A program made the translations under genes and the position numbers. From positions 124,001 to 188,000 of IMG/VR virus record IMGVR_UViG_3300026521_000471: a DNA stretch of 64,000 bases; one strand, given 5' to 3'. Shown piece after piece: positions 671 to 57,818 of this stretch (position 1 is its first letter; each line of letters opens with the position of its first letter). The notes beneath the pieces were generated by a model. That model saw only the letters and a list, made by a program, of their open reading frames with translations, did not search any database and had not been told where the DNA came from.

Positions 671-1192
671 ATGAAATTAAAAGACTTAATCAATGAAGAA
701 AAAGAAACTAAAGGGACTTATGCAGGTGTATTACTTAGTCAAGACGATGAAGATAAAATCATCTCAATAGTGAAAGAAATGGGAATACCTAATCCTATTC
801 CTCGAAAAGATATTCATATTACACTTTTGTATAGTAGAAAGGTACTACCAGATTATAAACCAAATGAAAATTTAGATATTTGGGCATATCCGACTGAATT
901 TCATATTTTTAATGGTGGTAATGGTAAAGATATTCTTGTATTAAAGATTGACTCTCCTGATTTAGTTAAAAGACATAAAGAGTTGATGAAAGAACATGAA
1001 GCTACTTATGATTTCCCAGAATATATCCCACATATCACATTAAGTTATGATTTAGAAGATTATTTAAATACAGAAGATGATAGACTTAAAGCCATTAATG
1101 AAAAATTTAAAAGTTTATTACCTAAAGAGTTTCATTTAGTTAGAGAATACGTAGAAGATTTAAATTTAGATTGGGAGAATAGTAATGACTGA
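671..1192 (+). CDS. acb1: anti-CBASS 2H phosphodiesterase Acb1 (T4 57B-like)
   Basis: Two HxT motifs (HITLLYSR, PHITLSY); PNPIPR, ATYDFPEY and C-terminal REYVEDLNLDW are colinear with T4 57B. Confidence 0.85.
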   Translation: MKLKDLINEEKETKGTYAGVLLSQDDEDKIISIVKEMGIPNPIPRKDIHITLLYSRKVLPDYKPNENLDIWAYPTEFHIFNGGNGKDILVLKIDSPDLVKRHKELMKEHEATYDFPEYIPHITLSYDLEDYLNTEDDRLKAINEKFKSLLPKEFHLVREYVEDLNLDWENSND

Positions 1193-2132
1193 AAATCTGT
1201 TAAATTATATTAAAGAGTTATCACTTAATGATAAAAAAACTTTAATTCAAAAAGTCACTAAGCTATTTGAAGAAGGTGGTGAACTTTCTAAAGTAGTTTT
1301 ACCATTTGAAGGAGCTTATGCTACAAATCATAGAGTAGTAAACAAACAAAAGATTCTTGAAGAATGTGCTGATGTTTTTCTAGTAAACCAAAGTATAATG
1401 TATAGTGCCGGGTTTACTGATGAAGAATTCAATGATATGGTTTTAAAGAAAGCTCAAGTATGGAATGGATTACAAGTTAAAGAAGATAGAGCATTAGCAA
1501 AAAGTGATTTGATGCCTTATGAAATTCATATTACAGTTAATGCTGAAAATGGCATTGATATAGAACAATATAAAAAAGATTGTAAATTTATCGGTGTTAA
1601 ACCTATTGTACTTGATTTACAAGATAAATCCGGTGAACCTGTTATGGATGATGTAATGACTTCATCTAAAATTGTTGGTAATAATGGTGAAGCATTTGAA
1701 GAAATGAAAAGAATTTCTAATCATCTAACTTCACTAGGTTATAATGTAATTAGAGAAAAGATTGAAGCCAGTTATTGGCATACTAAAGCACCTTTTAAAA
1801 TTGATGGCGATACAAAAATGCCAGAGGGATGCTATTTTGAATGCCACCTAAACGTTTCTTGTACAGATGAAAAATTACCTCTACTATCAACTATAGCAAA
1901 AAATACAAATTGTCATCTTTCAAAAAATAAATTTAAAGTATTTGATGATGGAAGCTTTACAATTATGATGACTTATCGAAGCTATGACCAAATGTTTGAA
2001 GATTTTGAAGATAGTTTAAAATGGATTAAAAAATGTTTAATTACAGATAATTTTGAATTAGAAAAAGAAGTAGTGGAATTTAGTATCTATGATACAAAAA
2101 TTACTCATGACTCAAAATGGTTGGAAGCGTAA
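1185..2132 (+). CDS. MazG-like NTP pyrophosphohydrolase fused to an internally duplicated ExH domain
   Basis: KLFEEGGEL and LEECADV MazG motifs; C-terminal repeats YEIHITV..REKIE and FECHLNV..KEVVE. Confidence 0.6.
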   Translation: MTENLLNYIKELSLNDKKTLIQKVTKLFEEGGELSKVVLPFEGAYATNHRVVNKQKILEECADVFLVNQSIMYSAGFTDEEFNDMVLKKAQVWNGLQVKEDRALAKSDLMPYEIHITVNAENGIDIEQYKKDCKFIGVKPIVLDLQDKSGEPVMDDVMTSSKIVGNNGEAFEEMKRISNHLTSLGYNVIREKIEASYWHTKAPFKIDGDTKMPEGCYFECHLNVSCTDEKLPLLSTIAKNTNCHLSKNKFKVFDDGSFTIMMTYRSYDQMFEDFEDSLKWIKKCLITDNFELEKEVVEFSIYDTKITHDSKWLEA

Positions 2133-2475
2133 ATTGAATACTAATCTTCTTGAGAAAAAAGCTGATGAATTAATAGACAATGCAGGAATTGTTTGTTTAT
2201 GCGGTAGTACAAAATTTAAAAAAGAATTTGAAATAGCTACTTCAATATTATCCAAAAAAGGCTTTATTGTATTAAGTGTTGCACAATTTTCCCATCATGA
2301 TAATTTACCTTTAACCGAATTTGAAAAAATAACTTTTAATAAGTTACATTTTAAAAAAATAGAATTAGCAGATTTAGTTTATATTGTCAATCCAAATAAT
2401 TATATTGGTGAATCTACAAAGGATGAAATTGAATATGCTAAATCTCTAAATAAAAAAATACAATATATGTTTTGA
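2089..2475 (+). CDS. nucleoside 2-deoxyribosyltransferase-like protein
   Basis: VCLCGS..F, HFKKIELAD, YIGEST..EIEYA pattern; start codon uncertain. Confidence 0.55.
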   Translation: MIQKLLMTQNGWKRKLNTNLLEKKADELIDNAGIVCLCGSTKFKKEFEIATSILSKKGFIVLSVAQFSHHDNLPLTEFEKITFNKLHFKKIELADLVYIVNPNNYIGESTKDEIEYAKSLNKKIQYMF

Positions 2476-2667: not shown

Positions 2668-3999
2668 GTGATTACATTAGAATATGTTGCTAGTGCTTGG
2701 ATGAATTTTAATTTCCTAAATTCAAAAGACCCGGAATTATTAAAATGGGCATCTGAAAATTATACTGCAAATTTAAAATATATGATGAGTAAATTAGAAA
2801 ATAATATTTTTGAATTTTCCGGACTTTATAATGCTTTTTATGAACCCGAACAATATGAGCGTATTTTAGAATGTGGAATAAGTGATCCGAGTTGCGGACA
2901 TAAACATGTTTATGCTGATAGTGGTGGTCTTCAGATGATGAAGCAAAATCTAAATATTACTGAAGAGATTAAAAAAAATATAATGCAAAATCAAGCAAAA
3001 TACTCAGATTTTGCATTTATTTTTGATGAAATACCATCTTATAATGTTGATGATACACGAGTATTTGTGAATGAATGGGTAAAACCTTACGGTGAAAGAA
3101 CAGGACAAAATTTAAATACATTATTAAAAGTTATAAAAGATAATAATTCTCATACAAAAGCAATACCTATTGTTCAAGGTAGAGGAAGAGAGCAAATAAC
3201 TGAATTTACAAACGCAATGTTATCTCAAATATCAAAGAACGATTTAAAATATATTGAAGCTTTTGCTATGGGTAATGCCCATGGAAATGGTTTTGGTTTA
3301 TTGCAATCTACTAGTACTTTTTTATCTATGAAAAATATCGATAATAAATTTAAAAAACACATTCACTTACTTGGAGTAACAGGTTTTGATAGGATGATTC
3401 CAATTCTTCAATTAGTAAAAAATGGTTTATTTGAGCATACCGAAAAGATTTCATTTGATAGCAGTTATCATGCTAAAACCTATGCTTTTGGCAATCTTCA
3501 AAAAAGCGTTGAATGGTGTATTAATGGTATGCAAGATGATAAATTAGGTTTAAAAAGAAATAAAATGACAGAAGACTTTTTTAAAGAATTAGATGATTTT
3601 TGGAAAAATTCTCCCACGTATAATATTGATGAATTTGATGACTATTTTAAATATTCATCATGGGATAAAGATAAAATCAACACACCAAATAGACAATTAG
3701 CTGAGCGAGACGTAGAAGCATATAAAAAAAATGTAAATATTATTCAAAATTATATTTTCTTAAATATGTACAAATATTTTGAAGTTTTAAATAAATTTAT
3801 GACTGATGAACTTACTATGGAGCAGATTCTCCATAGTAAAAAAACTCTAAAGATATTCCAACCATTACAAAATGTATATTCACTTGATGAATTATATGAT
3901 TGGGAAAATTATGCCGCATCAAATTATAAAGTTCAAGTTAGTAGCTCTATCGATAAAGCACCTTTTGACATTGATAAAGTAACTGATGTTTTATTTTAA
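2668..3999 (+). CDS. TGT/DpdA-like guanine transglycosylase, paralogue 1
   Basis: YADSGGLQ, FDEIP, PIVQG, HLLG and SFDSS occur in TGT order; no zinc-binding CxCxxC seen. Confidence 0.75.
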   Translation: MITLEYVASAWMNFNFLNSKDPELLKWASENYTANLKYMMSKLENNIFEFSGLYNAFYEPEQYERILECGISDPSCGHKHVYADSGGLQMMKQNLNITEEIKKNIMQNQAKYSDFAFIFDEIPSYNVDDTRVFVNEWVKPYGERTGQNLNTLLKVIKDNNSHTKAIPIVQGRGREQITEFTNAMLSQISKNDLKYIEAFAMGNAHGNGFGLLQSTSTFLSMKNIDNKFKKHIHLLGVTGFDRMIPILQLVKNGLFEHTEKISFDSSYHAKTYAFGNLQKSVEWCINGMQDDKLGLKRNKMTEDFFKELDDFWKNSPTYNIDEFDDYFKYSSWDKDKINTPNRQLAERDVEAYKKNVNIIQNYIFLNMYKYFEVLNKFMTDELTMEQILHSKKTLKIFQPLQNVYSLDELYDWENYAASNYKVQVSSSIDKAPFDIDKVTDVLF

Positions 4000-4011
4000 T
4001 AGGAAACATTT

Positions 4012-5322
4012 ATGACAACAAATTTAGAATTCGTTTTTTCAGCTTTTCCTCATTATATGAAAATGTGTAGGCAACAGGGTGAGATGTATAAAGCAACAGC
4101 CCAGTCAGTCCAAACATCAATAGCATATATGAGATCAAAACTCAAAGATAATGTATCTGTAAGTGCTTTATTTAATGCATATACAGAGGAAGATTGTGCT
4201 AGAAATGCATCTAATAGATTTACAGGTATGAAATCCATTATTGGTAGTAACCTCTATGCTGATAGTGGTGGATTACAAATGATGACTTTAGGACATACAG
4301 TTGATGAAGCACAAAGAAAAAAAATTTATGAAACCCAAATAAAATATGCGACACATGCTATGAGTTTTGATGAAATTCCCGGTATTTTCATTGATAAAAA
4401 AAAATATTATAAACCAGATACCGTATATAACTGTGGCGTTATTTCTGGGGGAAATTTACTTGAACAGTATAATTTTTTCAAAGAGGCTAGATCAAATACA
4501 AAAATTGTGCCAATTATTCAGGGATGGGGTTATAAAGATACAGATCTATTTACTCAAGGTTTGATGACAAATTGTAAAAATATTTGGAACGAATTTGATA
4601 TGTTAGCTGCTGGATTTCAAAGTTCATCAATTTGGGGAACGGCTCAAAGAGCAATAGATATATATACAAATCCATTACTCAAAAAACAATTTTTAAATCA
4701 TTATCACATGCTTGGTATGAGTGGTTATAAAAGAATAATCCCTATGATAATGATACTTAAAAGCGGATTAATAAAAGATATGAAGACACTTTCATTTGAT
4801 AGTTCCTCAATATCTATGACATATGTAATGGGCAACGTTATAAAATCGACTGATGATTTAATCAATAATAGAAAATATGAATTGGGGAAAGAAAGAACTA
4901 AAGAAGTTGAGGATTACTATAAAGAGCTGTATGAATTCTGGAAAGATGCACCCAATTGCAATTTTAAAGATTGGGAAGACTTATTAGAAAATTCTCAATG
5001 GAATAGTAGGGGTGTTAAGAGTGCAAAAGCTCGTCATGATGAAACCAATGATATTAATGAATCATTAAAATATCTGACACAAGAACAATATTTTATTTTC
5101 TATAATGTATATAAGTATGCTATGGTTCTTGAAGATTTTTTAGAGGGTAATATAGAATTATCAGATATATTTAAAGGTAAGGATTTAGAATTATTCAGTC
5201 AATTAGAAAAAATAGATAATATAGATGATTTCTATGAATGGCAAGATTATGTAAATAAAACACAAAATATAAAATTAGAAATATTTGAGAAAGATAATGA
5301 TTTTTCAAATATTTTATTTTAA
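4012..5322 (+). CDS. TGT/DpdA-like guanine transglycosylase, paralogue 2
   Basis: YADSGGLQ, FDEIP, PIIQG, HMLG and SFDSS; colinear with the upstream paralogue. Confidence 0.75.
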   Translation: MTTNLEFVFSAFPHYMKMCRQQGEMYKATAQSVQTSIAYMRSKLKDNVSVSALFNAYTEEDCARNASNRFTGMKSIIGSNLYADSGGLQMMTLGHTVDEAQRKKIYETQIKYATHAMSFDEIPGIFIDKKKYYKPDTVYNCGVISGGNLLEQYNFFKEARSNTKIVPIIQGWGYKDTDLFTQGLMTNCKNIWNEFDMLAAGFQSSSIWGTAQRAIDIYTNPLLKKQFLNHYHMLGMSGYKRIIPMIMILKSGLIKDMKTLSFDSSSISMTYVMGNVIKSTDDLINNRKYELGKERTKEVEDYYKELYEFWKDAPNCNFKDWEDLLENSQWNSRGVKSAKARHDETNDINESLKYLTQEQYFIFYNVYKYAMVLEDFLEGNIELSDIFKGKDLELFSQLEKIDNIDDFYEWQDYVNKTQNIKLEIFEKDNDFSNILF

Positions 5323-6485: not shown

Positions 6486-7379
6486 ATGACAATAGCATTT
6501 ATTTCGGATATTCATCTTGATTTTTGGATACCTATAAAATTAAATGGAACTAAAGAAGATTTACGATTAGACAACTTTATATCAAACACTTTAAAACCGA
6601 TAAAAGCTGATGTACTCATTATCGGTGGTGACAATTCCCACTATAATCAACAATTTAAAAAACTCCTTATAAAACTAGCAGAATTAAAATTATTTAAAAA
6701 GATAATTATTACTTATGGTAATCATGATATGTATTTAGTTTCAAATAAACAAATACACGATTATAAAATTTCGATCAATAAAATCACAGAAATGAAAAAA
6801 ATATGTACTGATATTGATACTGTTGAATTTTTAGATGGTAATATAATTGAGGTAGATGGAATAAAAATCGGAGGTTGTGCTATGTGGTATGATTATTCAT
6901 ATGCTAAAAAATTCTTTAATATGAATGATTTCCATATGCTACAAAAATGGAAACAGGTTATGAATGACGCCAACTATATTTATGGTACAGATCACTTAGG
7001 GTTAAATGAAGTTAGATCAATGTATTCATATGGAAAAACTAAAATTTATACTTTTGATCCATTGCTATTTTTTGAATCGGAAAAAGATAAACTATTAAAA
7101 ATAATAGATAAGGTAGATATTTTTGTTTCGCATTTTGGTCCAGCTATACCACCCAATTTGGAATCAAAATATATGAATATTGATACAGGTTTTTATTATT
7201 TTGATGGCGAACATTATCTTTGGGGTGAAAAAGCACCTAAATTATGGATTTTTGGACATACTCATACAAAATATGAATGGAAAGTTAATAATACATGGAT
7301 GGTATCAAATCCATTAGGATATAAATCTGAAAATACTGGAACATCTATTGATATAATAGAGTTAGACGACCTTTATTAA
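6486..7379 (+). CDS. calcineurin-like metallophosphoesterase
   Basis: SDIH, GGD, GNHD, SH and FGHTH motifs. Confidence 0.85.
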   Translation: MTIAFISDIHLDFWIPIKLNGTKEDLRLDNFISNTLKPIKADVLIIGGDNSHYNQQFKKLLIKLAELKLFKKIIITYGNHDMYLVSNKQIHDYKISINKITEMKKICTDIDTVEFLDGNIIEVDGIKIGGCAMWYDYSYAKKFFNMNDFHMLQKWKQVMNDANYIYGTDHLGLNEVRSMYSYGKTKIYTFDPLLFFESEKDKLLKIIDKVDIFVSHFGPAIPPNLESKYMNIDTGFYYFDGEHYLWGEKAPKLWIFGHTHTKYEWKVNNTWMVSNPLGYKSENTGTSIDIIELDDLY

Positions 7380-7382
7380 ATA

Positions 7383-7404
7383 TTAAGTTATATTTAGATA
7401 TAAT
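7383..7404 (+). promoter_or_regulatory. host sigma70-type promoter WTAAG-N11-TATAAT (representative site)
   Basis: Identical spacing at 6442, 7383, 11745, 12907, 26739 (TATTAT variant), 30036, 41538, 48320, 51292, 55834 and 58079, each just upstream of a gene start. Confidence 0.75.
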
Positions 7405-7433
7405 TATAATATTAAAATAAAAAGGTATTATAT

Positions 7434-8234
7434 ATGAACGATAAAACTTTCGATGAAGAAATTGGTGAATTTTCAGGATTTAGTGAAGCAGATTATAATT
7501 TAACTGAACCTATGAAATTAATAGCTAAAATGGAGATGAAAGCACTAAATGTTATTTGTGGTGAAAATAATGTTGGGAAAAGCCTAACAAATAAACTTCT
7601 CTGGGCTAGTACATTTTTTATGAATTTAAAAATTACTCAAAGTTTTAATTCATTACCTAAAGAACAAATGTCTGATGAAGAAATATTAGAATTAATATTA
7701 AATAATACATTTGATGATCAAAGTTTTGAAGGTACTATCAATTATTCATCAAGAGATGAAATAGTAAAGGTGGCTTTTTATAAATTAGAATATAGATTAG
7801 AAAATGGAAAAGTATGCGATCTTGTTATTGATTTTCCTAATAAAGCTAAGCCTATGGGTCCTATTATTTACCTTTCAAAAGAAGCAAGAGATTTTTCTAA
7901 TATTGAAAAATATTTAAAGATTAAAAAATTATTAAATATACACGAAATAGAATCTTGGGACAGTATTACTGCTTTATCTGACTTTTTCAAAATCTATGAT
8001 ATTTTAGCTATAGAATCACTTTTACAAAAGTTTGATAATGCTAGTGAATTTATCACTCTTATAAATCAAATGCCAGGTGGTAATGAATTACTAGATGATG
8101 ATTTAGTCGATATAAAATTAGATCATGAAAATTCTGAATTATATTATATTGATAAAAATAAGAATCAGAAACGTTTAAGTACATTAGGTGCTGGAACACA
8201 ATCTATAATATTAATGCTTCTTTCCGCAGTATAA
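7434..8234 (+). CDS. ABC/AAA_15-type ATPase fragment
   Basis: Walker A GENNVGKS; ends shortly after the signature-like LGAGTQS, with no Walker B. Confidence 0.55.
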   Translation: MNDKTFDEEIGEFSGFSEADYNLTEPMKLIAKMEMKALNVICGENNVGKSLTNKLLWASTFFMNLKITQSFNSLPKEQMSDEEILELILNNTFDDQSFEGTINYSSRDEIVKVAFYKLEYRLENGKVCDLVIDFPNKAKPMGPIIYLSKEARDFSNIEKYLKIKKLLNIHEIESWDSITALSDFFKIYDILAIESLLQKFDNASEFITLINQMPGGNELLDDDLVDIKLDHENSELYYIDKNKNQKRLSTLGAGTQSIILMLLSAV

Positions 8235-10096: not shown

Positions 10097-11284
10097 ATGG
10101 CAATTACACAGATAGCAGACTCAAATAATAATATAGGTACATTATATGAAGAGGTATTAAAACCTCTTTATGGTGATGATGCAGATAGAATTTTATCTAA
10201 TACAATATTAATCAGAAGTTTTTTTTTAAATATTATTAAAAAATTTGTTGATTCTGAAAATATGATTAATATTCGAGAATTTTCAACGGATCCTATTATG
10301 TATTACTTAACAAGTGGCGAGTACAACTATGATATTATTAAAGATTATATTACCGACTCAATAGTAATTCCCAATACTACTGATCTAAGTATGTTAAATA
10401 ATCAAATTAATAATTTGGAATATAAATTACCATTAGTAGTCGAAGCTCTATCATACAATAATGTTACTGAAGAATTATGGGATCAATATTTGGATGATAT
10501 TTTTTTATACTACGCTGATGATGCAAATAATCCAGTTCATAAAATTATAATTGAAGATGTCATATCGGTATTCAAGTTATGGAATGATACATCAAATACA
10601 AACCAAAAAGAAATGCTAAAAGCATACAATGCAAATAATAATATTTCGTATGATACTAATACTTTTTGGTTTGAACCATTTAATTCCATATCTAGTAAAT
10701 ATTGGGAAAAGTTTTCATTCGCTTTAACTATTAATGATTATGATATTTATGATTCTAATAATGATACGTATCTAGATATTATAGCGAATGAGTATTTCAC
10801 CAATGGATATTTTGATGAAATAATAATAAAAATAAACTACTACTATTGGTTTGATAATTTTCAAAAAATTACTGATTGGGTTGAAAAAAATCTAAAATCT
10901 GCTCTGGTTTCATATAGATTCAATACAATATTTTCAATTTCTAATAGATATGCAACTACTGAAGAAGCCGAAAAATATAATGACATCGTACGTCTAAATA
11001 CTGAAGATGAGGAATTAACTATGTATAAAGAACGATTACCAATACTCCTTGATACTATTCTTAAAAACCCTCAAACATATGGCTTTGAACTTATTGGTGG
11101 ATATTTTGGTAAAGAAGGATATAGTAATAATGCTGTTGATCAATCAATTTATGATAATGAGTTCAAAGATTATCTATGTGATATAGCTAATAGCTCACCA
11201 TTTAGCAGTTTAAATGATATGTATGTTAGAGTATTTAATGATCCAAATAAAAAAATTTTTATTTGTATTGATAATACCCCTTAA
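10097..11284 (+). CDS. acidic hypothetical protein, possibly structural
   Basis: 395-aa ORF after AATAAATA. Confidence 0.55.
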   Translation: MAITQIADSNNNIGTLYEEVLKPLYGDDADRILSNTILIRSFFLNIIKKFVDSENMINIREFSTDPIMYYLTSGEYNYDIIKDYITDSIVIPNTTDLSMLNNQINNLEYKLPLVVEALSYNNVTEELWDQYLDDIFLYYADDANNPVHKIIIEDVISVFKLWNDTSNTNQKEMLKAYNANNNISYDTNTFWFEPFNSISSKYWEKFSFALTINDYDIYDSNNDTYLDIIANEYFTNGYFDEIIIKINYYYWFDNFQKITDWVEKNLKSALVSYRFNTIFSISNRYATTEEAEKYNDIVRLNTEDEELTMYKERLPILLDTILKNPQTYGFELIGGYFGKEGYSNNAVDQSIYDNEFKDYLCDIANSSPFSSLNDMYVRVFNDPNKKIFICIDNTP

Positions 11285-26787: not shown

Positions 26788-27312
26788 ATGCTAGTTATTA
26801 AAGCTATACAATTTGCAGCAGAAAAACATAAAGGTCAAGAACGAAGATGTTCTGGATTACCCTATGTAACACATCCAATTATTGTATCTCAACTAATTGC
26901 AAAATATAAAAATGGCTCTAAAAAGCTAGATGAATTACAATGTGCTGGATTACTCCATGATGTTTTAGAAGATACAGATTGTACATATTCTGAGTTAGAG
27001 CGGGAATTTGGTCCATTAGTAGCTTCAATAGTCGTTGAATTAACGTCAGATCCTGTAGCAATTAAGCAGCTAGGTAAGAATGAATATTTAAAGCAAAAAA
27101 TGATTAAAATGTCTAAATATGCTTTTATCATAAAATTAATAGATCGACTTTCAAATGTTTTAGACAAACCTGGAGAGTCATATGTTAAAAAGACGTTAAA
27201 TATGATGGAATTTCTTAAAAAAAATCGTCCTGATATAACTGAACGGCAATTAAGAATTATAAATGAGATAGAAAATGTGTGTCTGGAGTTTCAAAAAAAT
27301 GAGTGTAAGTAA
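26788..27312 (+). CDS. HD-domain (p)ppGpp hydrolase-like protein (small alarmone hydrolase/Mesh1 type)
   Basis: AAEKHKGQER, PYVTHP, LLHDVLEDT, IKLIDRLSN; no synthetase domain. Confidence 0.85.
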   Translation: MLVIKAIQFAAEKHKGQERRCSGLPYVTHPIIVSQLIAKYKNGSKKLDELQCAGLLHDVLEDTDCTYSELEREFGPLVASIVVELTSDPVAIKQLGKNEYLKQKMIKMSKYAFIIKLIDRLSNVLDKPGESYVKKTLNMMEFLKKNRPDITERQLRIINEIENVCLEFQKNECK

Positions 27313-27817
27313 ATTTGAATATCAACTATTAGAAGATGAATTGAAAAAAACTAAACGTGAGTTAAACCAATTAAAAAATATGCAAGAATTTGAATATCTA
27401 GTAGGTCAAGAATTTAAAATGCCTATGAAATTTGGTTTTGATATTACAGAGTCAAATATTAAATCACTAAAAAGTGATTTAGGATTCATTTTATGGGCAC
27501 TTATAAAAAATAACCATTTAACTCCAGAAGATTTTGATGATGAAGTAATGTCAGCTGTTGAAAAAATAAATCAAATACGTCCAAAAAATTACGTAGAATT
27601 TAAAGCAGCAATATCGTTTAGTAGATTACGTCAATCTAATAAATATGGTAGTACCTATATTGAAGAATTTCAAACACAAATTTTAAATGATGTTTATTGG
27701 TTAGGAATCTGGTTTTATATTAAAAATCCACAAGAATTTTTATTTGAATATAATAATAAAATTATGCAATTAAACACTAAAAATTTTTCATTTGTAAACC
27801 CCCAATTATTTGTTTAA
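27275..27817 (+). CDS. hypothetical protein (C-terminal NPQLFV; start probably 27299)
   Basis: ORF; GGAG RBS precedes ATG at 27299. Confidence 0.55.
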   Translation: MCVWSFKKMSVSKFEYQLLEDELKKTKRELNQLKNMQEFEYLVGQEFKMPMKFGFDITESNIKSLKSDLGFILWALIKNNHLTPEDFDDEVMSAVEKINQIRPKNYVEFKAAISFSRLRQSNKYGSTYIEEFQTQILNDVYWLGIWFYIKNPQEFLFEYNNKIMQLNTKNFSFVNPQLFV

Positions 27818-34863: not shown

Positions 34864-35418
34864 CTAAAATATAAATATTTCTTTAATTTCTGGCATTAAC
34901 TCAGCAATATCACTACTAACAATCTCAGTCAAATTCTTATCTACATAATTAATAAACTCGTTAATAAGTATTTTTGACTCCTTAATCATTTTATTTACTT
35001 GTTCTTCTTCAGGTTTATCCTCTATACCTTCAAATAAATAAAGGGCTGAAGTATCCAATTTATTATATATGGCATTCATAATTTGGTTATTTGTTTTTGA
35101 ACCTATTTTAGAACCAAACATTAATGAACCTTTCAAATATCGTTCTCCAGGCGATCTAAAAGCAGACCCCATCCTAGTAACTGATATACCAAATTTAAAA
35201 TATATTTGTAATGGATTCTTATCTGGAAATGCTGAAAACTCATAAATTATATCTAATGTATCATTCCAACCTGTTCTAAGTTCTATTGCTTCGATACTAA
35301 TACCATAATCTTTAAAAGAATTATCTATTTGAACTAAAAATTCATCTTTTGATTTTTTTAAATAAAAATATTGTATATCCTTACTGGGAAACATACCCAA
35401 ATTATTGATAAATTCCAT
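34864..35418 (-). CDS. hypothetical protein
   Basis: Coupled ORF. Confidence 0.6.
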   Translation of the reverse strand: MEFINNLGMFPSKDIQYFYLKKSKDEFLVQIDNSFKDYGISIEAIELRTGWNDTLDIIYEFSAFPDKNPLQIYFKFGISVTRMGSAFRSPGERYLKGSLMFGSKIGSKTNNQIMNAIYNKLDTSALYLFEGIEDKPEEEQVNKMIKESKILINEFINYVDKNLTEIVSSDIAELMPEIKEIFIF

Positions 35419-48429: not shown

Positions 48430-49068
48430 ATGAAAAAAATACTTATAGTAGTAGACTACCAATTTGACTTTGCTAGCCCAACAGGGGCTCTATCAGTACC
48501 CAATGCTGATAAAATAGTTGATAACATCCAATCTTATATCAATGATAAATCGTATGAAAATATAATTTATACTTTTGATACTCATACATCTGATAAATAT
48601 AATGGTTCTGATGAATCTAAAATTTTTCCTTCAATTCATTGTGAATTTGGAACAATCGGTTGGAATTTTTATAAAATTAAACCCAGATATAAAAATTGGG
48701 ATAATTTTATTGCAAATCGTGGAATCGATGAAGGTACAGTACCTTTTAACACCTTTATAGTTGAATCGGAAATGTTTTTTACAAAAGATGTTTTTGATAT
48801 TTGGCAAGGAAATTCAATCTTTAAATCTATTTTTACAAATACCTTTAAACCAAAGGACACAATTATAGACATTGTAGGTGTAGCTACAAATTACTGCGTA
48901 TTTATGAATGTTATGGGTCTAGTAAAAAATGGTTATACAGTTAATGTTCTTTCAGATGCTGTTGAAGGGATTAAATCATTTCCAGATGGATCAATAGATG
49001 ATAGTTTTCAAACAAATATCAATGTTATGAAAAATAAAGGTGTAACTTTTTCTGGAGACATAAAATGA
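48430..49068 (+). CDS. pncA: nicotinamidase
   Basis: VVDYQFDF, GALSV, DTH, HC, K, VGVATNYCV. Confidence 0.85.
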   Translation: MKKILIVVDYQFDFASPTGALSVPNADKIVDNIQSYINDKSYENIIYTFDTHTSDKYNGSDESKIFPSIHCEFGTIGWNFYKIKPRYKNWDNFIANRGIDEGTVPFNTFIVESEMFFTKDVFDIWQGNSIFKSIFTNTFKPKDTIIDIVGVATNYCVFMNVMGLVKNGYTVNVLSDAVEGIKSFPDGSIDDSFQTNINVMKNKGVTFSGDIK

Positions 49069-49961
49069 TTATGAAAGTAATAGAAAGTTCAGAAGAGAAT
49101 GTTTGGAAATATATTTTTAATGATAATGAAATAGTTTTGGAAAGTGTATTATATAAATACGGTTCATTCGATAAAAGAACTGTTATTTGTTGTTCTGTAC
49201 AAAGTGGTTGTCCGGTTGGATGTACATTTTGTGGAACAGGTGCAAATTTCTTAAAAAATATTTCATCAGATCAAATAGTTGAGCAAATAACAACTATTTT
49301 TAAAGATAAAAATATCGAGGATATAAACAGTAGATGTGAAAAGCTTCAAATAATGTTTATGAGTATGGGTGAACCATTTCTTAATTACAAAAATGTTAAA
49401 GAAGCAATAATTAAATTGAATAAATTATACCCTAATGCCGACTTATTAATATCTACTGTTGGTATTAATGATGATAAAATTTTTAAAGATTTTATTTCAT
49501 TATCTAAAATGATTAAAAAAGTTGGTTTACAATTTAGTATTCATAAATCAAATGATACAGATAGAGATAAATTAATACCCTTTAAAAAGAAATATACACT
49601 TAGGGAAATCAGAGATAGAGGTACTATTTGGCATAAAGAAACAGGGAGACAAGTATATCTCAACTACTGTGTTGATGGTACAAATAATAGTCAAAATGAT
49701 ATTGAGAATCTTAAGAATCTCTTTTCTCCAATTATTTTTAATATGACATTTAGTGTTATTTGTGAAGCAGATGAAACAATGAAAGATAGTTCATGTAGAA
49801 ATTTGAATACGATTAGAGATTTTGAAAAATCTTTTATTGAAGAAGGGTATAATACCAGAATATTTGATCCTGCTGGACAGGACGATATTGGTGGAGGATG
49901 TGGCCAATTATGGTTCGTTCAAGATTATCTTAAAAATAAAAAAATGAAAGCAGAGGTATAA
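49065..49961 (+). CDS. RlmN/Cfr-like radical SAM RNA methyltransferase
   Basis: SVQSGCPVGCTFC, FMSMGEP, ISTVG, FSIH, DIGGGCGQL. Confidence 0.8.
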   Translation: MIMKVIESSEENVWKYIFNDNEIVLESVLYKYGSFDKRTVICCSVQSGCPVGCTFCGTGANFLKNISSDQIVEQITTIFKDKNIEDINSRCEKLQIMFMSMGEPFLNYKNVKEAIIKLNKLYPNADLLISTVGINDDKIFKDFISLSKMIKKVGLQFSIHKSNDTDRDKLIPFKKKYTLREIRDRGTIWHKETGRQVYLNYCVDGTNNSQNDIENLKNLFSPIIFNMTFSVICEADETMKDSSCRNLNTIRDFEKSFIEEGYNTRIFDPAGQDDIGGGCGQLWFVQDYLKNKKMKAEV

Positions 49962-49965
49962 AATT

Positions 49966-50919
49966 ATGGAAAAAATAGAAACACTAACCGATATGGTAGA
50001 AGTAATCAGAGAAATAAAAACACCGACAAGTCAAAAAGCTAATATGGTTGTAGGAAATATTAGAGCACAAATTAAAAATTACGTACAACGTAATAATCTT
50101 AAATCACTTGTAGTAGGTGTGAGTGGGGGTCTTGATTCAGCTGTTGTAGCGGCTCTTTGTCAAGAAGAATTTACAGGAGTACCTCTAATTGGTCTTTCTA
50201 TTCCTATGAGTTCAACTAACGCTCACAAAGAACAGGCAGAATGGGTAGGTAATACCTTTTGTACGGCTTTTGAAGAATTCAACTATTGGGATGAAACTTT
50301 TCAGTACAATGAAGAAGAAGGTACTGATATGATGAGTGAAGTATTTAATACCGTTTCAGCAACAGATAAAGTTGCTGAAAAAGCAGGATTTAAAACGGAA
50401 GATTTTCCAAAAAATGTTCTTCAAGGTAATATTAAAGCGAGGCTTAGAATGATAACTCTTTATGACCTTGCAAGAAAAACAAACGGTATGGTTCTTTCAA
50501 CAGATAACCTTTCTGAATTTCAAATGGGATTTTGGACTATTTGTGGTGATGTAGGTGATTTTGGACCTATCCAAAATGTTGGTAAGGGGTTTGAGCTTCC
50601 AGCCATAGCAAGAGCTCTTGGAATAAGAGCAGATATTATCACTCAATCGCCTAGTGATGGACTAATGGTAACTGAAGAAAATACAGATGAGGCTCAACTT
50701 GGAGCTAATTATGAGGAAGTTGATACTATTATGAGTATTTATCTTGGCAATATCAATAAACCAAAAGAAATTATAGATAAACTTAAAAGTAACCTATTTA
50801 ATATTATTAATGATAAAAAGAGTGCTAAGAAAATTTCAAATGTAATTACACGTTATGAAAATTCACACTTTAAACGTAATGGTACAATCAACCTTACAAG
50901 AGAACAGATCGGAATCTAA
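49966..50919 (+). CDS. nadE: NH3-dependent NAD synthetase
   Basis: GVSGGLDS, GNIKARLRM, STDNLSE, GD, PSDGL, TDEAQLG, HFKR. Confidence 0.9.
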   Translation: MEKIETLTDMVEVIREIKTPTSQKANMVVGNIRAQIKNYVQRNNLKSLVVGVSGGLDSAVVAALCQEEFTGVPLIGLSIPMSSTNAHKEQAEWVGNTFCTAFEEFNYWDETFQYNEEEGTDMMSEVFNTVSATDKVAEKAGFKTEDFPKNVLQGNIKARLRMITLYDLARKTNGMVLSTDNLSEFQMGFWTICGDVGDFGPIQNVGKGFELPAIARALGIRADIITQSPSDGLMVTEENTDEAQLGANYEEVDTIMSIYLGNINKPKEIIDKLKSNLFNIINDKKSAKKISNVITRYENSHFKRNGTINLTREQIGI

Positions 50920-50944
50920 ATTCCGATCAAAAAAAAGGATATTT

Positions 50945-51289
50945 ATGGTTTACCGTTCTAAAGCTGATTTAGAGGAAATTAGAAAGTCACAAAATAATAT
51001 TAAATTATATGCTGTATATTCACATCTTGCATTACCCGTATTTAAAATCAAATCATTAAGTAAAAAATATGTATATTGGGAAGATAATTCAAAACATCCA
51101 TATCCTAGTAATTCAGCAGGTTATATATTAACAGACAATTTATATGAAGGTTGGAAAATATATAAAGATACTTATAATAAACGGAAAAAATTTATTGAAG
51201 ACCAATATAAATCAGAAATACAAAAATTAACAATGGCAGAATCTATACTAGATTCTCTTTCAAAATCAAATCCAGAACTTTTTATCTGA
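50945..51289 (+). CDS. hypothetical protein (C-terminal NPELFI)
   Basis: AAGGA RBS before ATG at 50945; the track start at 50855 overlaps nadE. Confidence 0.6.
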   Translation: MVYRSKADLEEIRKSQNNIKLYAVYSHLALPVFKIKSLSKKYVYWEDNSKHPYPSNSAGYILTDNLYEGWKIYKDTYNKRKKFIEDQYKSEIQKLTMAESILDSLSKSNPELFI

Positions 51290-51318
51290 TTTTAAGTATA
51301 ATTCCATTATAATCCACT

Positions 51319-51639
51319 ATGTTAAATAATTTAAAATTAAAGTTCATTTATACATTTATCAATTTTAAAATACAAAGGGTAGGACATATGTTAAATCTCA
51401 AAATAGATCCAGATAATAAATCCATAAAATTATCTATTTTATTACTTGGTGAAGATGAACCATTAGATATAGATATTAAATCTTATGAACTAATAGAAGA
51501 AAATAATAAATCTTATATAAAAATAAATGATGTAGAAACTAGTAAAACATGGATGAATATCCTAATATTAGAATTTGTTGAAAATAATAAGATAGAAATT
51601 TCAAATAAAATTTCAAAACTATTGAAAATAATTATATAA
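51319..51639 (+). CDS. hypothetical protein
   Basis: ATG directly after a WTAAG-N11-TATAAT promoter (possibly leaderless); alternative start at 51388. Confidence 0.55.
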   Translation: MLNNLKLKFIYTFINFKIQRVGHMLNLKIDPDNKSIKLSILLLGEDEPLDIDIKSYELIEENNKSYIKINDVETSKTWMNILILEFVENNKIEISNKISKLLKIII

Positions 51640-51652
51640 AAAAGGACATAGC

Positions 51653-51856
51653 ATGACACATAATGAATTAACAAAATTAAATAATTTAGTAGAAAACCTA
51701 AATACAAAATTTAATGAAAATAAAACATTAGAGGGTTTTATACGTTTTACGAAAAAAATTAATATGGTTGAGACAGTTTCATTTAAACAAGTTAAGTATG
51801 AGATTGATTTAATGTATGAACGTCTTTTAGAAGAACAAGAAGAAAATACATGGTAA
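51653..51856 (+). CDS. small hypothetical protein
   Basis: AAGGA RBS. Confidence 0.55.
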   Translation: MTHNELTKLNNLVENLNTKFNENKTLEGFIRFTKKINMVETVSFKQVKYEIDLMYERLLEEQEENTW

Positions 51857-51865
51857 AGGATAACT

Positions 51866-53005
51866 ATGAAAAAAAGTATGAGAGAAGAATCTTTAGGAAC
51901 TAGACTTAAAGGTTATGAAAGAGAGTTTGAATCAGTAATCGATCCAAAGGATTTTATTATTTGTAGAATTGATGGACATAAATTTAGCAAATATACAAAA
52001 GGTATGAAAAAACCATTTGATAAAATGTTGTCAAATACAATGGAGGAAACTACTAAAGACCTTGTTGAAAAATTTGGAGCCGTAACGGGCTATACGCAAT
52101 CTGATGAAATTTCATTGGTTTTTGTCCCTCAATTCAAAGAAAGATTAATACCTATTGAAACCAAAGAATTATTTGTTCTTAATGATGAAGAAGCAACCTA
52201 TAAAGTTTATGACAAAGAATACAACTTGCTAGGTTCATTAGATATTAGTTATGAAGATATGGATGATGAATATTTCAGTATTAACTTTTGGGTAGTTTCT
52301 GATACTAATGATGAAATTATCGATCAATGTTCTTGGCAAAATAGAAACTCTAAAACTGAGGCTAAAGCATTAGAAACGCTTTTAAAGTATATCATTAAGA
52401 AAGTTGAAATAACAAATGAGCAAATTTTTGGAGGAAGAGTTCAGAAATTAACTTCTTTGATTGCGGCATATACTACTATGCAGTTTAATAAACACTTTTC
52501 TAAATTTTTAGAAAAAACATACGAAGATTATGAAGAAAAATTAGAAAAGGGCGAAATCGATACGAATAGTTTAGAGGCCATGAAATACCTTAAAACAATG
52601 GATGAAAAAGTAGGTAATGCTTGGTTTGATGCTAGAGTTTATGGCGTATCATCTAAAGAAGAAGCATTTAACAGTATTATGTGGCGAATTCGTGATGCCG
52701 AGAAGAACTCTAGATCAATGTTTGCACAGACATACTGCTCTCATAAATCGCTATTAGGAAAAAATGGTCTTGAACAGGTTGAATACTGTAAAGAAACTAC
52801 TGGTAAAGATTGGGAAGAAGTTGAAGATAAATACAAATATGGCATTTTAGTTAAAAAAGAAAAATATCTTAAACCTATTTCTGAAGGGACTATGGATTAT
52901 GCTCAAAATGATTTTGTAGAAAGATCCAGAATTATTAGTTGGGCTGAAAAAATTACTACTTTCTCTGGTGAAAAAGTTGAAATGGTTGTTAGGAAATATA
53001 AATGA
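51866..53005 (+). CDS. Thg1-like 3'-5' nucleotidyltransferase with internal insertion
   Basis: CRIDGHKFSKYT, KPFD, GYTQSDEISL, FGGRVQKL, FDAR, WRIRDAEKNS. Confidence 0.88.
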   Translation: MKKSMREESLGTRLKGYEREFESVIDPKDFIICRIDGHKFSKYTKGMKKPFDKMLSNTMEETTKDLVEKFGAVTGYTQSDEISLVFVPQFKERLIPIETKELFVLNDEEATYKVYDKEYNLLGSLDISYEDMDDEYFSINFWVVSDTNDEIIDQCSWQNRNSKTEAKALETLLKYIIKKVEITNEQIFGGRVQKLTSLIAAYTTMQFNKHFSKFLEKTYEDYEEKLEKGEIDTNSLEAMKYLKTMDEKVGNAWFDARVYGVSSKEEAFNSIMWRIRDAEKNSRSMFAQTYCSHKSLLGKNGLEQVEYCKETTGKDWEEVEDKYKYGILVKKEKYLKPISEGTMDYAQNDFVERSRIISWAEKITTFSGEKVEMVVRKYK

Positions 53006-57290: not shown

Positions 57291-57458
57291 ATGAAATACG
57301 GTTTTAGTTTATTTGAATTAATTATTGTAGTTGTAATATTGGGAATTCTAGCAGCAGTTGCTATTCCTAGATTATCAAATTCTTCATCAAATAATGATAA
57401 AATTTCATACAAAAAAATAATTTTTACTAATGGTGATGGTGGATCCGCCGAGAATTGA
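57291..57458 (+). CDS. mini prepilin-like peptide (55 aa, not in ORF track)
   Basis: MKYG/FSLFELIIVVVILGILAAVAIPRL class III signal (G-1, F+1, E+5); GAGG RBS. Confidence 0.75.
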   Translation: MKYGFSLFELIIVVVILGILAAVAIPRLSNSSSNNDKISYKKIIFTNGDGGSAEN

Positions 57459-57818
57459 ACTCGGGTCTGCCACTACTTCCATTTAAATCTCATTTACAAG
57501 TTTAGTTTGATTTTTAATACTTTAATACTTAGATAACCAAACAAATCGGTATTAAAGGCACTTGATATAATTTTCGTCTAAAGGTATCAAGTTTAACTTT
57601 AGCTTATCTATTTTTTATTATACACTCTGTATTTATTAGTAAATAGACAACTAATAAACTGAGTGATTCCGGGCTCCCAGAGGGAGGATTAAGCAGCTAC
57701 TCTCGCAGTCTGTGGAATATAAAGTTTTGTGTTTGCATTTAAGCTTTTTTGATGATTAAGTCATCACTCTACTTGCAATTTAAATTTCTTATAGCAACAT
57801 CGATCCCAATTCGGACCC
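57437..57818 (-). ncRNA. ssrA: tmRNA
   Basis: 5' GGGTCCG pairs with 3' CGGATCC-ACCA with a G3-U wobble; T-arm CCGAG-TTCAATT-CTCGG; tag ORF ANTKLYIPQTARVAA* at 57736-57689. Confidence 0.93.

Follow-up and report, generated by a model that had tools for sequence, protein, structure and literature searches.

Tandem genes for diverged DpdA2-family transglycosylases with clamp-binding-like C-terminal tails in a large, low-GC, T4-related phage

The 64,000-nucleotide stretch of DNA analysed here (the window) comprises bases 124001-188000 of IMG/VR record IMGVR_UViG_3300026521_000471, hereafter G000, a sequence of 224,467 bp with a completeness rating of 85% and a GC content of about 27%, which comes from a large T4-related phage of low GC and with a genome of over 224 kb. 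The subject of this study is a pair of open reading frames (ORFs) lying head to tail on the same strand of the window and separated by a gap of 12 bases:

2668..3999, plus strand: ORF A, 443 amino acids (aa), DpdA2-family transglycosylase with a tRNA-guanine transglycosylase (TGT) fold, subfamily II of an expanded clade
4012..5322, plus strand: ORF B, 436 aa, DpdA2-family paralogue, placed in subfamily IV by the tree

A first-pass annotation, made from the sequence alone, had taken A and B to be colinear paralogues, and BLASTP aligns them colinearly with 31% identity across 424 residues (E 5e-65), with every motif named in that annotation (DSGGxQ, FD, QG, HxxG and FDSS) present in both proteins at equivalent positions. 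The segment thought to line the substrate pocket (FAMGNAH in A, LAAGFQS in B) and the C-terminal ends (VTDVLF and FSNILF) differ between the two exactly as had been described. The features of the pair are as follows, the coordinates being those of the window:

2917..2934, plus strand: A DSGGLQ, residues 84-89, unchanged in all 35 aligned relatives
3022..3036, plus strand: A FDEIP, residues 119-123, with F119, D120 and P123 invariant
3175..3186, plus strand: A QGRG strand end, residues 170-173; QG in subfamilies II-IV, HG in subfamily I
3262..3282, plus strand: A FAMGNAH pocket segment, residues 199-205; subfamily II signature A[MLC]GNAHGNG[FY]G
3364..3375, plus strand: A HLLG strand, residues 233-236, with H233, L235 and G236 invariant
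3454..3465, plus strand: A FDSS, residues 263-266, with D264 and S265 invariant
3979..3996, plus strand: A C-terminal tail VTDVLF-COOH, a clamp-binding-like, flexible end of low predicted local distance difference test (pLDDT) score, its LF ending common to six paralogues
4261..4278, plus strand: B DSGGLQ, residues 84-89, from the motif scan
4366..4380, plus strand: B FDEIP, residues 119-123, from the motif scan
4519..4530, plus strand: B QGWG, residues 170-173; QGW is a subfamily IV signature
4603..4623, plus strand: B LAAGFQS pocket segment, residues 198-204; subfamily IV signature of GF, then [QPA], then mostly Ser/Thr
4705..4716, plus strand: B HMLG strand, residues 232-235, from the motif scan
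4795..4806, plus strand: B FDSS, residues 262-265, with putative catalytic Asp263, from motif comparison
5302..5319, plus strand: B C-terminal tail FSNILF-COOH, pLDDT below 50 for residues 429-436

The three aspartates D84, D120 and D264 (A numbering) are invariant across every paralogue and relative compared. In the bacterial DpdA (bDpdA) three catalytic aspartates serve, as in TGT, as general acid/base, in base recognition and as nucleophile (PMC10164549), and by analogy Asp84 of A would be equivalent to the general acid/base (bDpdA Asp95), Asp120 to the residue that reads the Watson-Crick edge of guanine (bDpdA Asp130) and Asp264 to the catalytic nucleophile (bDpdA Asp256), with Leu88 probably at the base-stacking position held by Phe99 in bDpdA. 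Neither A nor B has a CxCxxC motif, as the first-pass annotation had noted for the pair, and the motif was likewise missing from all 41 family members examined; A and B each have a single cysteine C-terminal to the FDS motif. Structure prediction with AlphaFold2 gave a model of B with a pLDDT of 89.0, for which all 50 of the 50 best Foldseek matches in the PDB were TGT, and a TGT-type triosephosphate isomerase (TIM) barrel bearing the three invariant active-site aspartates is thus predicted.

A tblastn search with A against annotated phages returned 71 records at 26-29% identity, including Vibrio Schizotequatroviruses (KVP40, VH7D, phi-pp2 and others), the Stenotrophomonas phages Moby and IME-SM1, Pseudomonas phage pf16, and phages of Acidovorax, Xanthomonas and Synechococcus. 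The match in VH7D, CF80_gp012 (26.8% identity, E 2e-23), is encoded between FolE and QueF/QueC, and that in Moby, gp042, which carries the HHpred-derived annotation queuine tRNA-ribosyltransferase, is located between QueC and QueE. With the queries reversed, both the VH7D DpdA2 (E 1e-21 to 8e-30) and the Moby DpdA2 (E 3e-14 to 6e-31) matched six out of the six copies that G000 was found to encode. It is from these matches to annotated phages, together with structure prediction, that the link to TGT derives. The DpdA2 subfamily was defined by Hutinet et al. (PMC6884629). When expressed in E. coli the VH7D enzyme inserted preQ1, then preQ0 and then, weakly, 7-carboxy-7-deazaguanine (CDG) into DNA, the nt-1 enzyme put preQ0 into DNA, and both functioned alone, the modification achieved by DpdA2 enzymes being about 0.1% or less of G (PMC10516641). 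The TGT/DpdA-like identity originally proposed for A and B is therefore upheld by homology to DpdA2, fold and catalytic residues, with the qualification that the family already has a name: A and B are not a new enzyme type and are, judged by their sequences, diverged members of the known DpdA2 subfamily. Both proteins fall into phrog_10773 of PHROGs, described as 'unknown function' (E 1.6e-36 for B). A Pfam match of B to YgaB was dismissed as chance.

Comparison with the characterised enzymes places A and B more exactly. With the DpdA2 proteins of nt-1 and VH7D (Hutinet et al. 2019, 2023) they share homology across about 60-90% of their length, the catalytic motifs, the lack of a zinc site and an acidic-hydrophobic C-terminal tail, and the G000 copies are linked in the genome to QueD/QueE-type genes; however, G000 has six copies in four subfamilies rather than one gene, the pocket segment is rewritten in each subfamily, the tail is reduced to x[ND]xLF, A and B adjoin no deazaguanine synthesis gene, and FolE and QueC were not found in G000. 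Bacterial TGT (PF01702; Z. mobilis structures) has the DSGG, (F/L)DE, QG and (F)D motifs in equal strand order, but identity to it is 13-15%, A and B have neither a match to the Pfam TGT model nor the structural zinc site CxCxxC...H, they possess an extra helical C-terminal region and the clamp-like tail, and members of their family act on DNA. The bDpdA of the S. Montevideo Dpd system (PDB 7UI4) is a preQ0 insertase of DNA that has the TGT fold and shares the three aspartates (PMC10164549); it was matched by Foldseek (E 1.7e-6), but its TM-score to the model is low (0.36-0.38), and bDpdA has a zinc site and requires the ParB-like ATPase DpdB, whereas DpdA2 works alone (PMC10516641). The bDpdA pattern of a zinc site and DpdA-specific insertions does not describe A and B, in which the zinc site is missing.

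The pair was originally seen as a set of two. The adjacency stands, but the count does not, as a search of the whole record with A gives six paralogues:

G000 97868-99421: P1, DpdA2 paralogue, subfamily I
G000 100580-101929: P2, DpdA2 paralogue, subfamily III
G000 101930-103519: P3, DpdA2 paralogue, subfamily I
G000 about 111805-113350: P4, DpdA2 paralogue, subfamily IV
G000 126.7-128.0 kb and 128.0-129.3 kb: A and B in genome coordinates

P1-P4 lie 11-26 kb upstream of the window (loci L009 and L010) and are interleaved with a QueE-like radical S-adenosylmethionine (SAM) gene. Multiple copies are also found elsewhere. A related 306-kb phage record (G001), the syntenic genes of which are 45-56% identical to those of G000, has four copies arranged as two tandem pairs, and two unrelated metagenome contigs (L118 and L119) have three copies apiece within 15-19 kb, while the 156-163-kb phages checked (G002, G003 and G004, the last being pf16) have a single copy each. 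The copy expansion is a trait of the lineage. A maximum-likelihood tree of 41 sequences, which sets the paralogues against their DpdA relatives, unites the expanded copies, without exception, in a single clade (100/100) that lies within ordinary DpdA2 and comprises four groups common to several phages: subfamily I with P1, P3 and the b and c copies of G001; subfamily II with A and its metagenomic orthologues; subfamily III with P2, the a copy of G001 and P0011; and subfamily IV with B, P4, the d copy of G001 and P0009-P0014. The four subfamilies are 26-44% identical to one another, and at least four phages have retained them in parallel. The sharing of the four groups between phages shows that the duplications are old and that the copies have been maintained side by side.

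The frequency of tandem copies (A-B and P2-P3 in G000, two pairs in G001) might suggest that they form heterodimers of a catalytic and a non-catalytic subunit, as in eukaryotic QTRT1/QTRT2, the first-pass annotation having already raised a heterodimer as such, and both bacterial and eukaryotic TGTs do work as dimers (PMC6884629). However, six out of six copies retain the three catalytic aspartates together with the DSGGLQ, HxLG and FDS motifs, so that no copy looks like a dead partner; only one copy was found in the 19-21-kb stretches retrieved around the A-type orthologues of two related phages; bDpdA is monomeric (PMC10164549); and the VH7D and nt-1 DpdA2 enzymes act alone in E. coli (PMC10516641). 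The heterodimer idea thus finds no support in the catalytic residues or in the single copies found in these stretches, and is considered very unlikely.

The active-site strands are conserved within each subfamily and differ between subfamilies, the pocket segment of subfamily II also differing from that of canonical DpdA2. The contrast in pocket segment first noticed between A and B holds across different phages, each subfamily having its own conserved version: beside the signatures of subfamilies II and IV listed above, subfamily III has a short Gly-rich loop, and subfamily I has IASL...ADN[KR]VG plus an insertion, with HG for QG on the preceding strand. Going by strand order in the model, the variable segment probably sits at the position of the TGT 229-233 loop that reads the 7-substituent of preQ1. 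It could be argued that the copies are simply redundant DNA transglycosylases of one specificity, maintained for their dosage or timing, or to serve as decoys for the inhibitors or glycosylases of the host; all share a common catalytic core, and as DpdA2 modifies about 0.1% or less of G, more enzyme could raise the level (PMC10516641). Such an explanation is unlikely, since plain redundancy would not be expected to preserve subfamily-specific pocket differences, and here four old subfamilies with separate pocket segments, one of them with HG for QG and an insertion, have persisted together in at least four phages. The pocket pattern seems to fit different base or sequence-context specificities better. 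In the full-text literature searched, the coverage of which mostly excludes subscription journals, no paper describing multi-copy DpdA arrays was found, and a conserved multi-paralogue array with four pocket types appears to be new.

The 5' end of P4 is apparently frameshifted (L010:1805-1900, G000 about 111805-111900). A frame that begins with the ATG at L010:1805 codes for the family's N-terminal LELVISG-type strand and ends at about 1894, with the main frame running from about 1887; the two meet at a GGG run, which would fit an assembly error in the homopolymer, a genuine -1 shift or a truncated gene with an internal Met start.

An important consideration is where the 7-deazaguanine base would come from. 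The reported lack of preQ0 synthesis genes in the window is consistent with genome-wide searches (tblastn with phage FolE, QueC, QueF and QueE; Pfam QueC, PTPS and GTP_cyclohydroI), which placed no 7-deazaguanine synthesis gene there, not every ORF of the window having been scanned individually. Extending the search for folE, queD, queE and queC to the genome gave a divided answer: a QueD and a QueE-like protein were found, but FolE and QueC were not. The QueD/PTPS protein (G000 90.76-91.36 kb) matches PF01242 (E 3e-20) and, since it keeps the Cys...HGH motif, looks like QueD and not like DpdL, the proposed CDG decarboxylase of the PTPS family (PMC10516641), an assignment that was rejected. 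The radical SAM protein encoded between P1 and P2 (G000 99.8-100.56 kb) has QueE families as its five best NCBIfam matches, the best at 4e-20 and all below the curated cut-offs, and is 25% identical to Moby QueE. Both genes lie near P1-P3, 24-33 kb upstream of the window, and neither is beside A or B. With QueD and QueE-like genes in the genome, the phage alone could get as far as CDG. A QueC-like match in the window (15 bits) proved to be NAD synthase instead. Relatives carry further genes of this kind: QueC is encoded near the arrays of both contig L119 and G001 (E 1e-54 in the latter), and G001 has in addition a QueE-like gene and, by its DpdA2 pairs, two genes for ArcS-C1 (DUF5591):

L106:4389-5132 and L106:6040-6696 (G001): ArcS-C1 (DUF5591) genes, one of which ends NSLF

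Around P1-P4 there are also genes for a flavin adenine dinucleotide (FAD) oxidoreductase, a short-chain dehydrogenase/reductase (SDR), two GT1-like glycosyltransferases, a radical SAM/SPASM protein and an aspartyl-tRNA synthetase; of these the oxidoreductase, SDR, glycosyltransferases and radical SAM/SPASM protein could make a further-modified base.

The C-termini provide the second line of evidence. All six paralogues end in LF (VTDVLF, FSNILF, PTNALF, STNILF, PSDSLF and AMNDLF), P4 having an additional internal TTNLLF, and they make up six of the nine LF-ending ORFs among the 340 of G000, where 1.5 would be expected; in the expanded clade as a whole the ending occurs in 21 of 22 members. When the tails of IMG/VR DpdA2 homologues with a complete 3' end (n=79) were compared with those of other ORFs of the same loci (n=455), the motif [ST]L[ED]x[LF]F, with no more than three residues after it, closed 74 of the 79 DpdA2 homologues as against 24 of the 455 controls. 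The motif stands at the end of a flexible segment, the pLDDT of the A model falling to 59 and then 42 across the last 14 residues and that of both A and B being below 60 over the last 10-14, while P1, P3 and P4 have long, charged, non-conserved extensions ahead of the terminal LF. In T4, gp43 ends ASLDFLFG and gp55 ends SLDFLYEAND, and these tails are interchangeable ligands of the sliding clamp and known clamp-binding epitopes, the polymerase tail being such an epitope in both T4 and RB69 (PMC2988020). At the level of the family, the acidic-hydrophobic tail of DpdA2 resembles that of the polymerase of the same phage: SLDDLFG and SLEDLFGW in Moby, DLEDFF and SLDDFF in G003, and LEALFGE and SLESLFA in G002 (DpdA2 first in each case). 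Clamps are present in G002, G003 and G005, and in G005 the clamp gene is directly upstream of dpdA2. The clamp-binding-like C-termini that had been noticed in A and B are thus real as a motif, which is terminal, family-wide and like that of T4 polymerase. With the gp43, gp55 and gp33 epitopes the tails have in common a short acidic-hydrophobic peptide at the C-terminal extreme after a flexible linker, but those of A and B are a reduced variant, and clamp binding by DpdA2 is a prediction. An experimental precedent for a DNA-modifying enzyme that rides the clamp is T4 alpha-glucosyltransferase, which binds gp45 (PMC13216743), although that enzyme is itself without such a C-terminal motif. Overall it is probable that the DpdA2 family is tethered to the clamp through its tail, and somewhat less certain that A and B in particular are. 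The same literature contained no paper tying DpdA2 to the clamp, and a polymerase-like, clamp-binding-type tail throughout the family appears to be new.

A tail of the same type is also seen on a GT1-family glycosyltransferase of about 455-480 aa, the gene for which adjoins dpdA2 in distant phages (G003 and L077). The G000 protein, which ends ELLF, is 34% identical to its G003 orthologue (E 5e-70), and the association may point to a DNA glycosyltransferase that is tethered to the clamp and acts together with DpdA2. The three genes are:

L009:15266-16705 (G000 105266-106705): GT1 glycosyltransferase, tail ELLF
L076:1629-2993: GT1 glycosyltransferase, tail LDAFFG
L077:4125-5483: GT1 glycosyltransferase, tail LEGLFE

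Taken as a whole, the explanation that we favour, and to which we attach a fair though by no means commanding probability, is that A and B are two of six DpdA2-family transglycosylases that are carried on the clamp and specialised by pocket. Each would be a zinc-less TGT-fold TIM barrel that, by analogy with TGT and bDpdA, flips deoxyguanosine out of duplex DNA. The FDS aspartate (Asp264 in A) would attack C1' with release of guanine, the DSGG aspartate (Asp84) acting as general acid/base and the FDE aspartate (Asp120) reading the Watson-Crick edge, after which a free 7-deazaguanine base would be installed. That base would be made at least partly by the phage QueD and QueE-like enzymes, up to CDG, with FolE, and QueC if it is used, supplied by the host or by the unsequenced 15% of the genome. 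Because the pocket-lining segments of the four old subfamilies differ, the six copies would most likely differ in the 7-deazaguanine derivative or the DNA sequence context that they serve, and since the tail imitates the one by which T4-type DNA polymerases bind the clamp, the flexible LF-COOH end would probably let the enzymes travel with the sliding clamp, so that DNA is modified immediately behind the fork. Homology, fold, conserved catalytic residues, copy number, subfamily structure and the conservation of the tail are observed here, and DNA as substrate, the base used, clamp binding and a division of labour among the copies are inferred from them.

A number of observations count against this explanation. 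The clade is just 26-30% identical to the experimentally tested DpdA2 enzymes and is without the zinc site of TGT and bDpdA; a Pfam scan at E values up to 1 gave no family for A, an NCBIfam scan of A and B gave no match, and searching PDB sequences with A, with B and with a profile of 35 sequences gave chance matches only. FolE and QueC were not found by tblastn or Pfam in the 85%-complete record, leaving it uncertain which base is supplied. Among the tRNA genes of the phage are those for all four GUN-anticodon species, the classical TGT substrates. As for the tail, the pf16 DpdA2 does not have a good one (TLDLMCA, beside a polymerase ending SLEDFFS), and those of A and B are reduced to [ST][DN]xLF, with the terminal LF and a polar or acidic residue only and no Leu at -4. 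No T4-type clamp was found in the 85%-complete G000 record with PF02916, PF09116, tblastn of T4 gp45 or a hidden Markov model built from four clamps, nor any clamp loader or full-length polymerase with PF03104 or tblastn of T4 gp43, gp44, gp45, gp46, gp47 and gp62. Finally, a complex prediction made on the relative G003, with the clamp trimer and DpdA2 residues 361-420, was graded as weak support. Its score was 0.40, the best of the controls reaching 0.00, with a partner pLDDT of at least 37 and agreement between runs in at least 56% of contacts. In calibration 51 of 78 solved complexes attained the mark, as did 2 of 108 mismatched pairs, but a pass at or below 0.60 was wrong more often than right, and the prediction was not counted as evidence of binding.

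The tRNA complement bears on a different interpretation, namely that the paralogues are tRNA-guanine transglycosylases for position 34 (or another position) of phage or host tRNAs, forming part of a large translation-related gene set. G000 encodes 22 tRNAs, including Tyr-GTA, Asn-GTT, Asp-GTC (two) and His-GTG, together with an aspartyl-tRNA synthetase, a Thg1-like enzyme and a transfer-messenger RNA (tmRNA), and the closest solved structures are tRNA TGTs. Against this, the activity demonstrated for the DpdA2 family is on DNA (PMC10516641), both the PF01702 match and the zinc subdomain are missing, a polymerase-like clamp-binding tail suits a DNA enzyme and would be odd on a tRNA enzyme, and six copies are hard to account for with four tRNA species; a role on tRNA is accordingly judged very unlikely.

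It may also be the case that the LF tail is a real ligand whose partner is not the clamp, for example a single-strand-binding protein, some other component of the replisome or packaging machinery, or an enzyme of the pathway. The failure to find a clamp in G000, the departure of the A and B tails from canonical SLxxLF and the weakness of the G003 prediction all lean in this direction, and the occurrence of the same tail on the GT1 glycosyltransferase and an ArcS-like pathway protein would fit another shared scaffold. In the relatives that do encode a clamp, however, the DpdA2 tail closely matches that of the polymerase of the same phage, the polymerase tail of T4 and RB69 is the clamp-binding epitope (PMC2988020), the clamp gene adjoins dpdA2 in G005, and the controls of the complex test scored 0.00. 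A partner other than the clamp, though a real alternative, is on this evidence rather unlikely.

With regard to the polymerase, the sole trace was a weak match to PF00136 (DNA_pol_B; 29 bits) in a 283-aa ORF at G000 64573-65424. A DNA_pol_B-like ORF of roughly 283-300 aa is conserved in G001 (L105:3268-4167), where a 579-aa ORF matches the exonuclease region of T4 as well. G000 may have a replicative polymerase that is split or very divergent, or one encoded in the missing part of the genome.

DpdA enzymes open the way to 7-deazaguanine modification of DNA, which shields phages from restriction enzymes and CRISPR-Cas9 (PMC6884629, PMC10484667). Among the questions in the field are how post-replicative DpdA enzymes find their targets and why modification levels are spread from 0.01% to 100% of G. 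A conserved clamp-binding tail on DpdA2, if true, would offer T4-like phages a simple and testable answer in the form of coupling to the replication fork, and the model also bears on why some phages carry many DpdA genes. The four-subfamily arrays provide a ready-made series of enzymes, related but differing in their pockets, in which the determinants of base or sequence specificity might be mapped, and the enzymes could possibly be used for writing different deazaguanines into DNA. A more ambitious version, in which the four DpdA2 subfamilies would act as a replisome-tethered toolkit on the clamp, placing multiple 7-deazaguanines or serving multiple contexts, reaching levels above those of a single DpdA2 and having their products decorated by the GT1 enzyme, is tentative and on balance doubtful.

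The genes around the pair in the window are:

671-1192, plus strand: anti-CBASS (cyclic-oligonucleotide-based anti-phage signalling system) Acb1 homologue (E 1e-33), upstream of ORF A
1185-2132, plus strand: MazG-like pyrophosphatase (phrog_1247, E 2.5e-39), upstream of ORF A
2089-2475, plus strand: DUF4406 protein directly 5' of ORF A, with a weak Pfam match just below the curated cut-off; probably nucleoside deoxyribosyltransferase-like
6486-7379, plus strand: metallophosphoesterase (phrog_1649, E 1e-40), two genes 3' of ORF B, C-terminus ELDDLY

The genes directly 5' of ORF A constitute a nucleotide-metabolism and counter-defence neighbourhood. The ELDDLY end of the metallophosphoesterase resembles SLDFLY, the clamp-binding epitope of T4 gp55. 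When a 12-kb part of the window was compared by megablast with 50,697 phage records, no match was obtained.

Other features of the genome include the phage-encoded tmRNA, at window 57437-57818 (minus strand) with the tag peptide ANTKLYIPQTARVAA, and the 22 tRNA genes, which form two clusters at 67.8-72.4 kb and 81.2-83.8 kb of G000. Two sets of proteins have endings of their own. Seven proteins of 114-534 aa, without a PHROG match, mostly end in Y[LI]Pxx[VL]x[DN][ILM]F[VIL]F:

window 34864-35418, minus strand: Y[LI]Pxx-type protein
G000 6918-7442, 10238-10996, 87128-88732, 197838-198305, 206338-207081 and 217292-217636: the other six

Small proteins of about 90-180 aa that end PE[IL][FY][ILV] (in one case PQLFV), at window 27275-27817 and 50855-51289 (both plus strand) with six more in G000, are probably a paralogous family. 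A nicotinamide adenine dinucleotide (NAD) salvage set occupies the region of window 48430-53005 (plus strand), with an isochorismatase-like protein and the NAD synthase, its nicotinate phosphoribosyltransferase (NAPRTase) lying outside the window at G000 114641-116005. A second Fer4_12/radical SAM protein is encoded at window 49065-49961 and a Thg1-like tRNA-His guanylyltransferase at window 51866-53005. Elsewhere in G000 there are genes for an aspartyl-tRNA synthetase (94364-96214), a GGDEF diguanylate cyclase (116056-116805), a GroEL-type chaperonin (121726-123351) and a Sir2-like protein (210233-211078).

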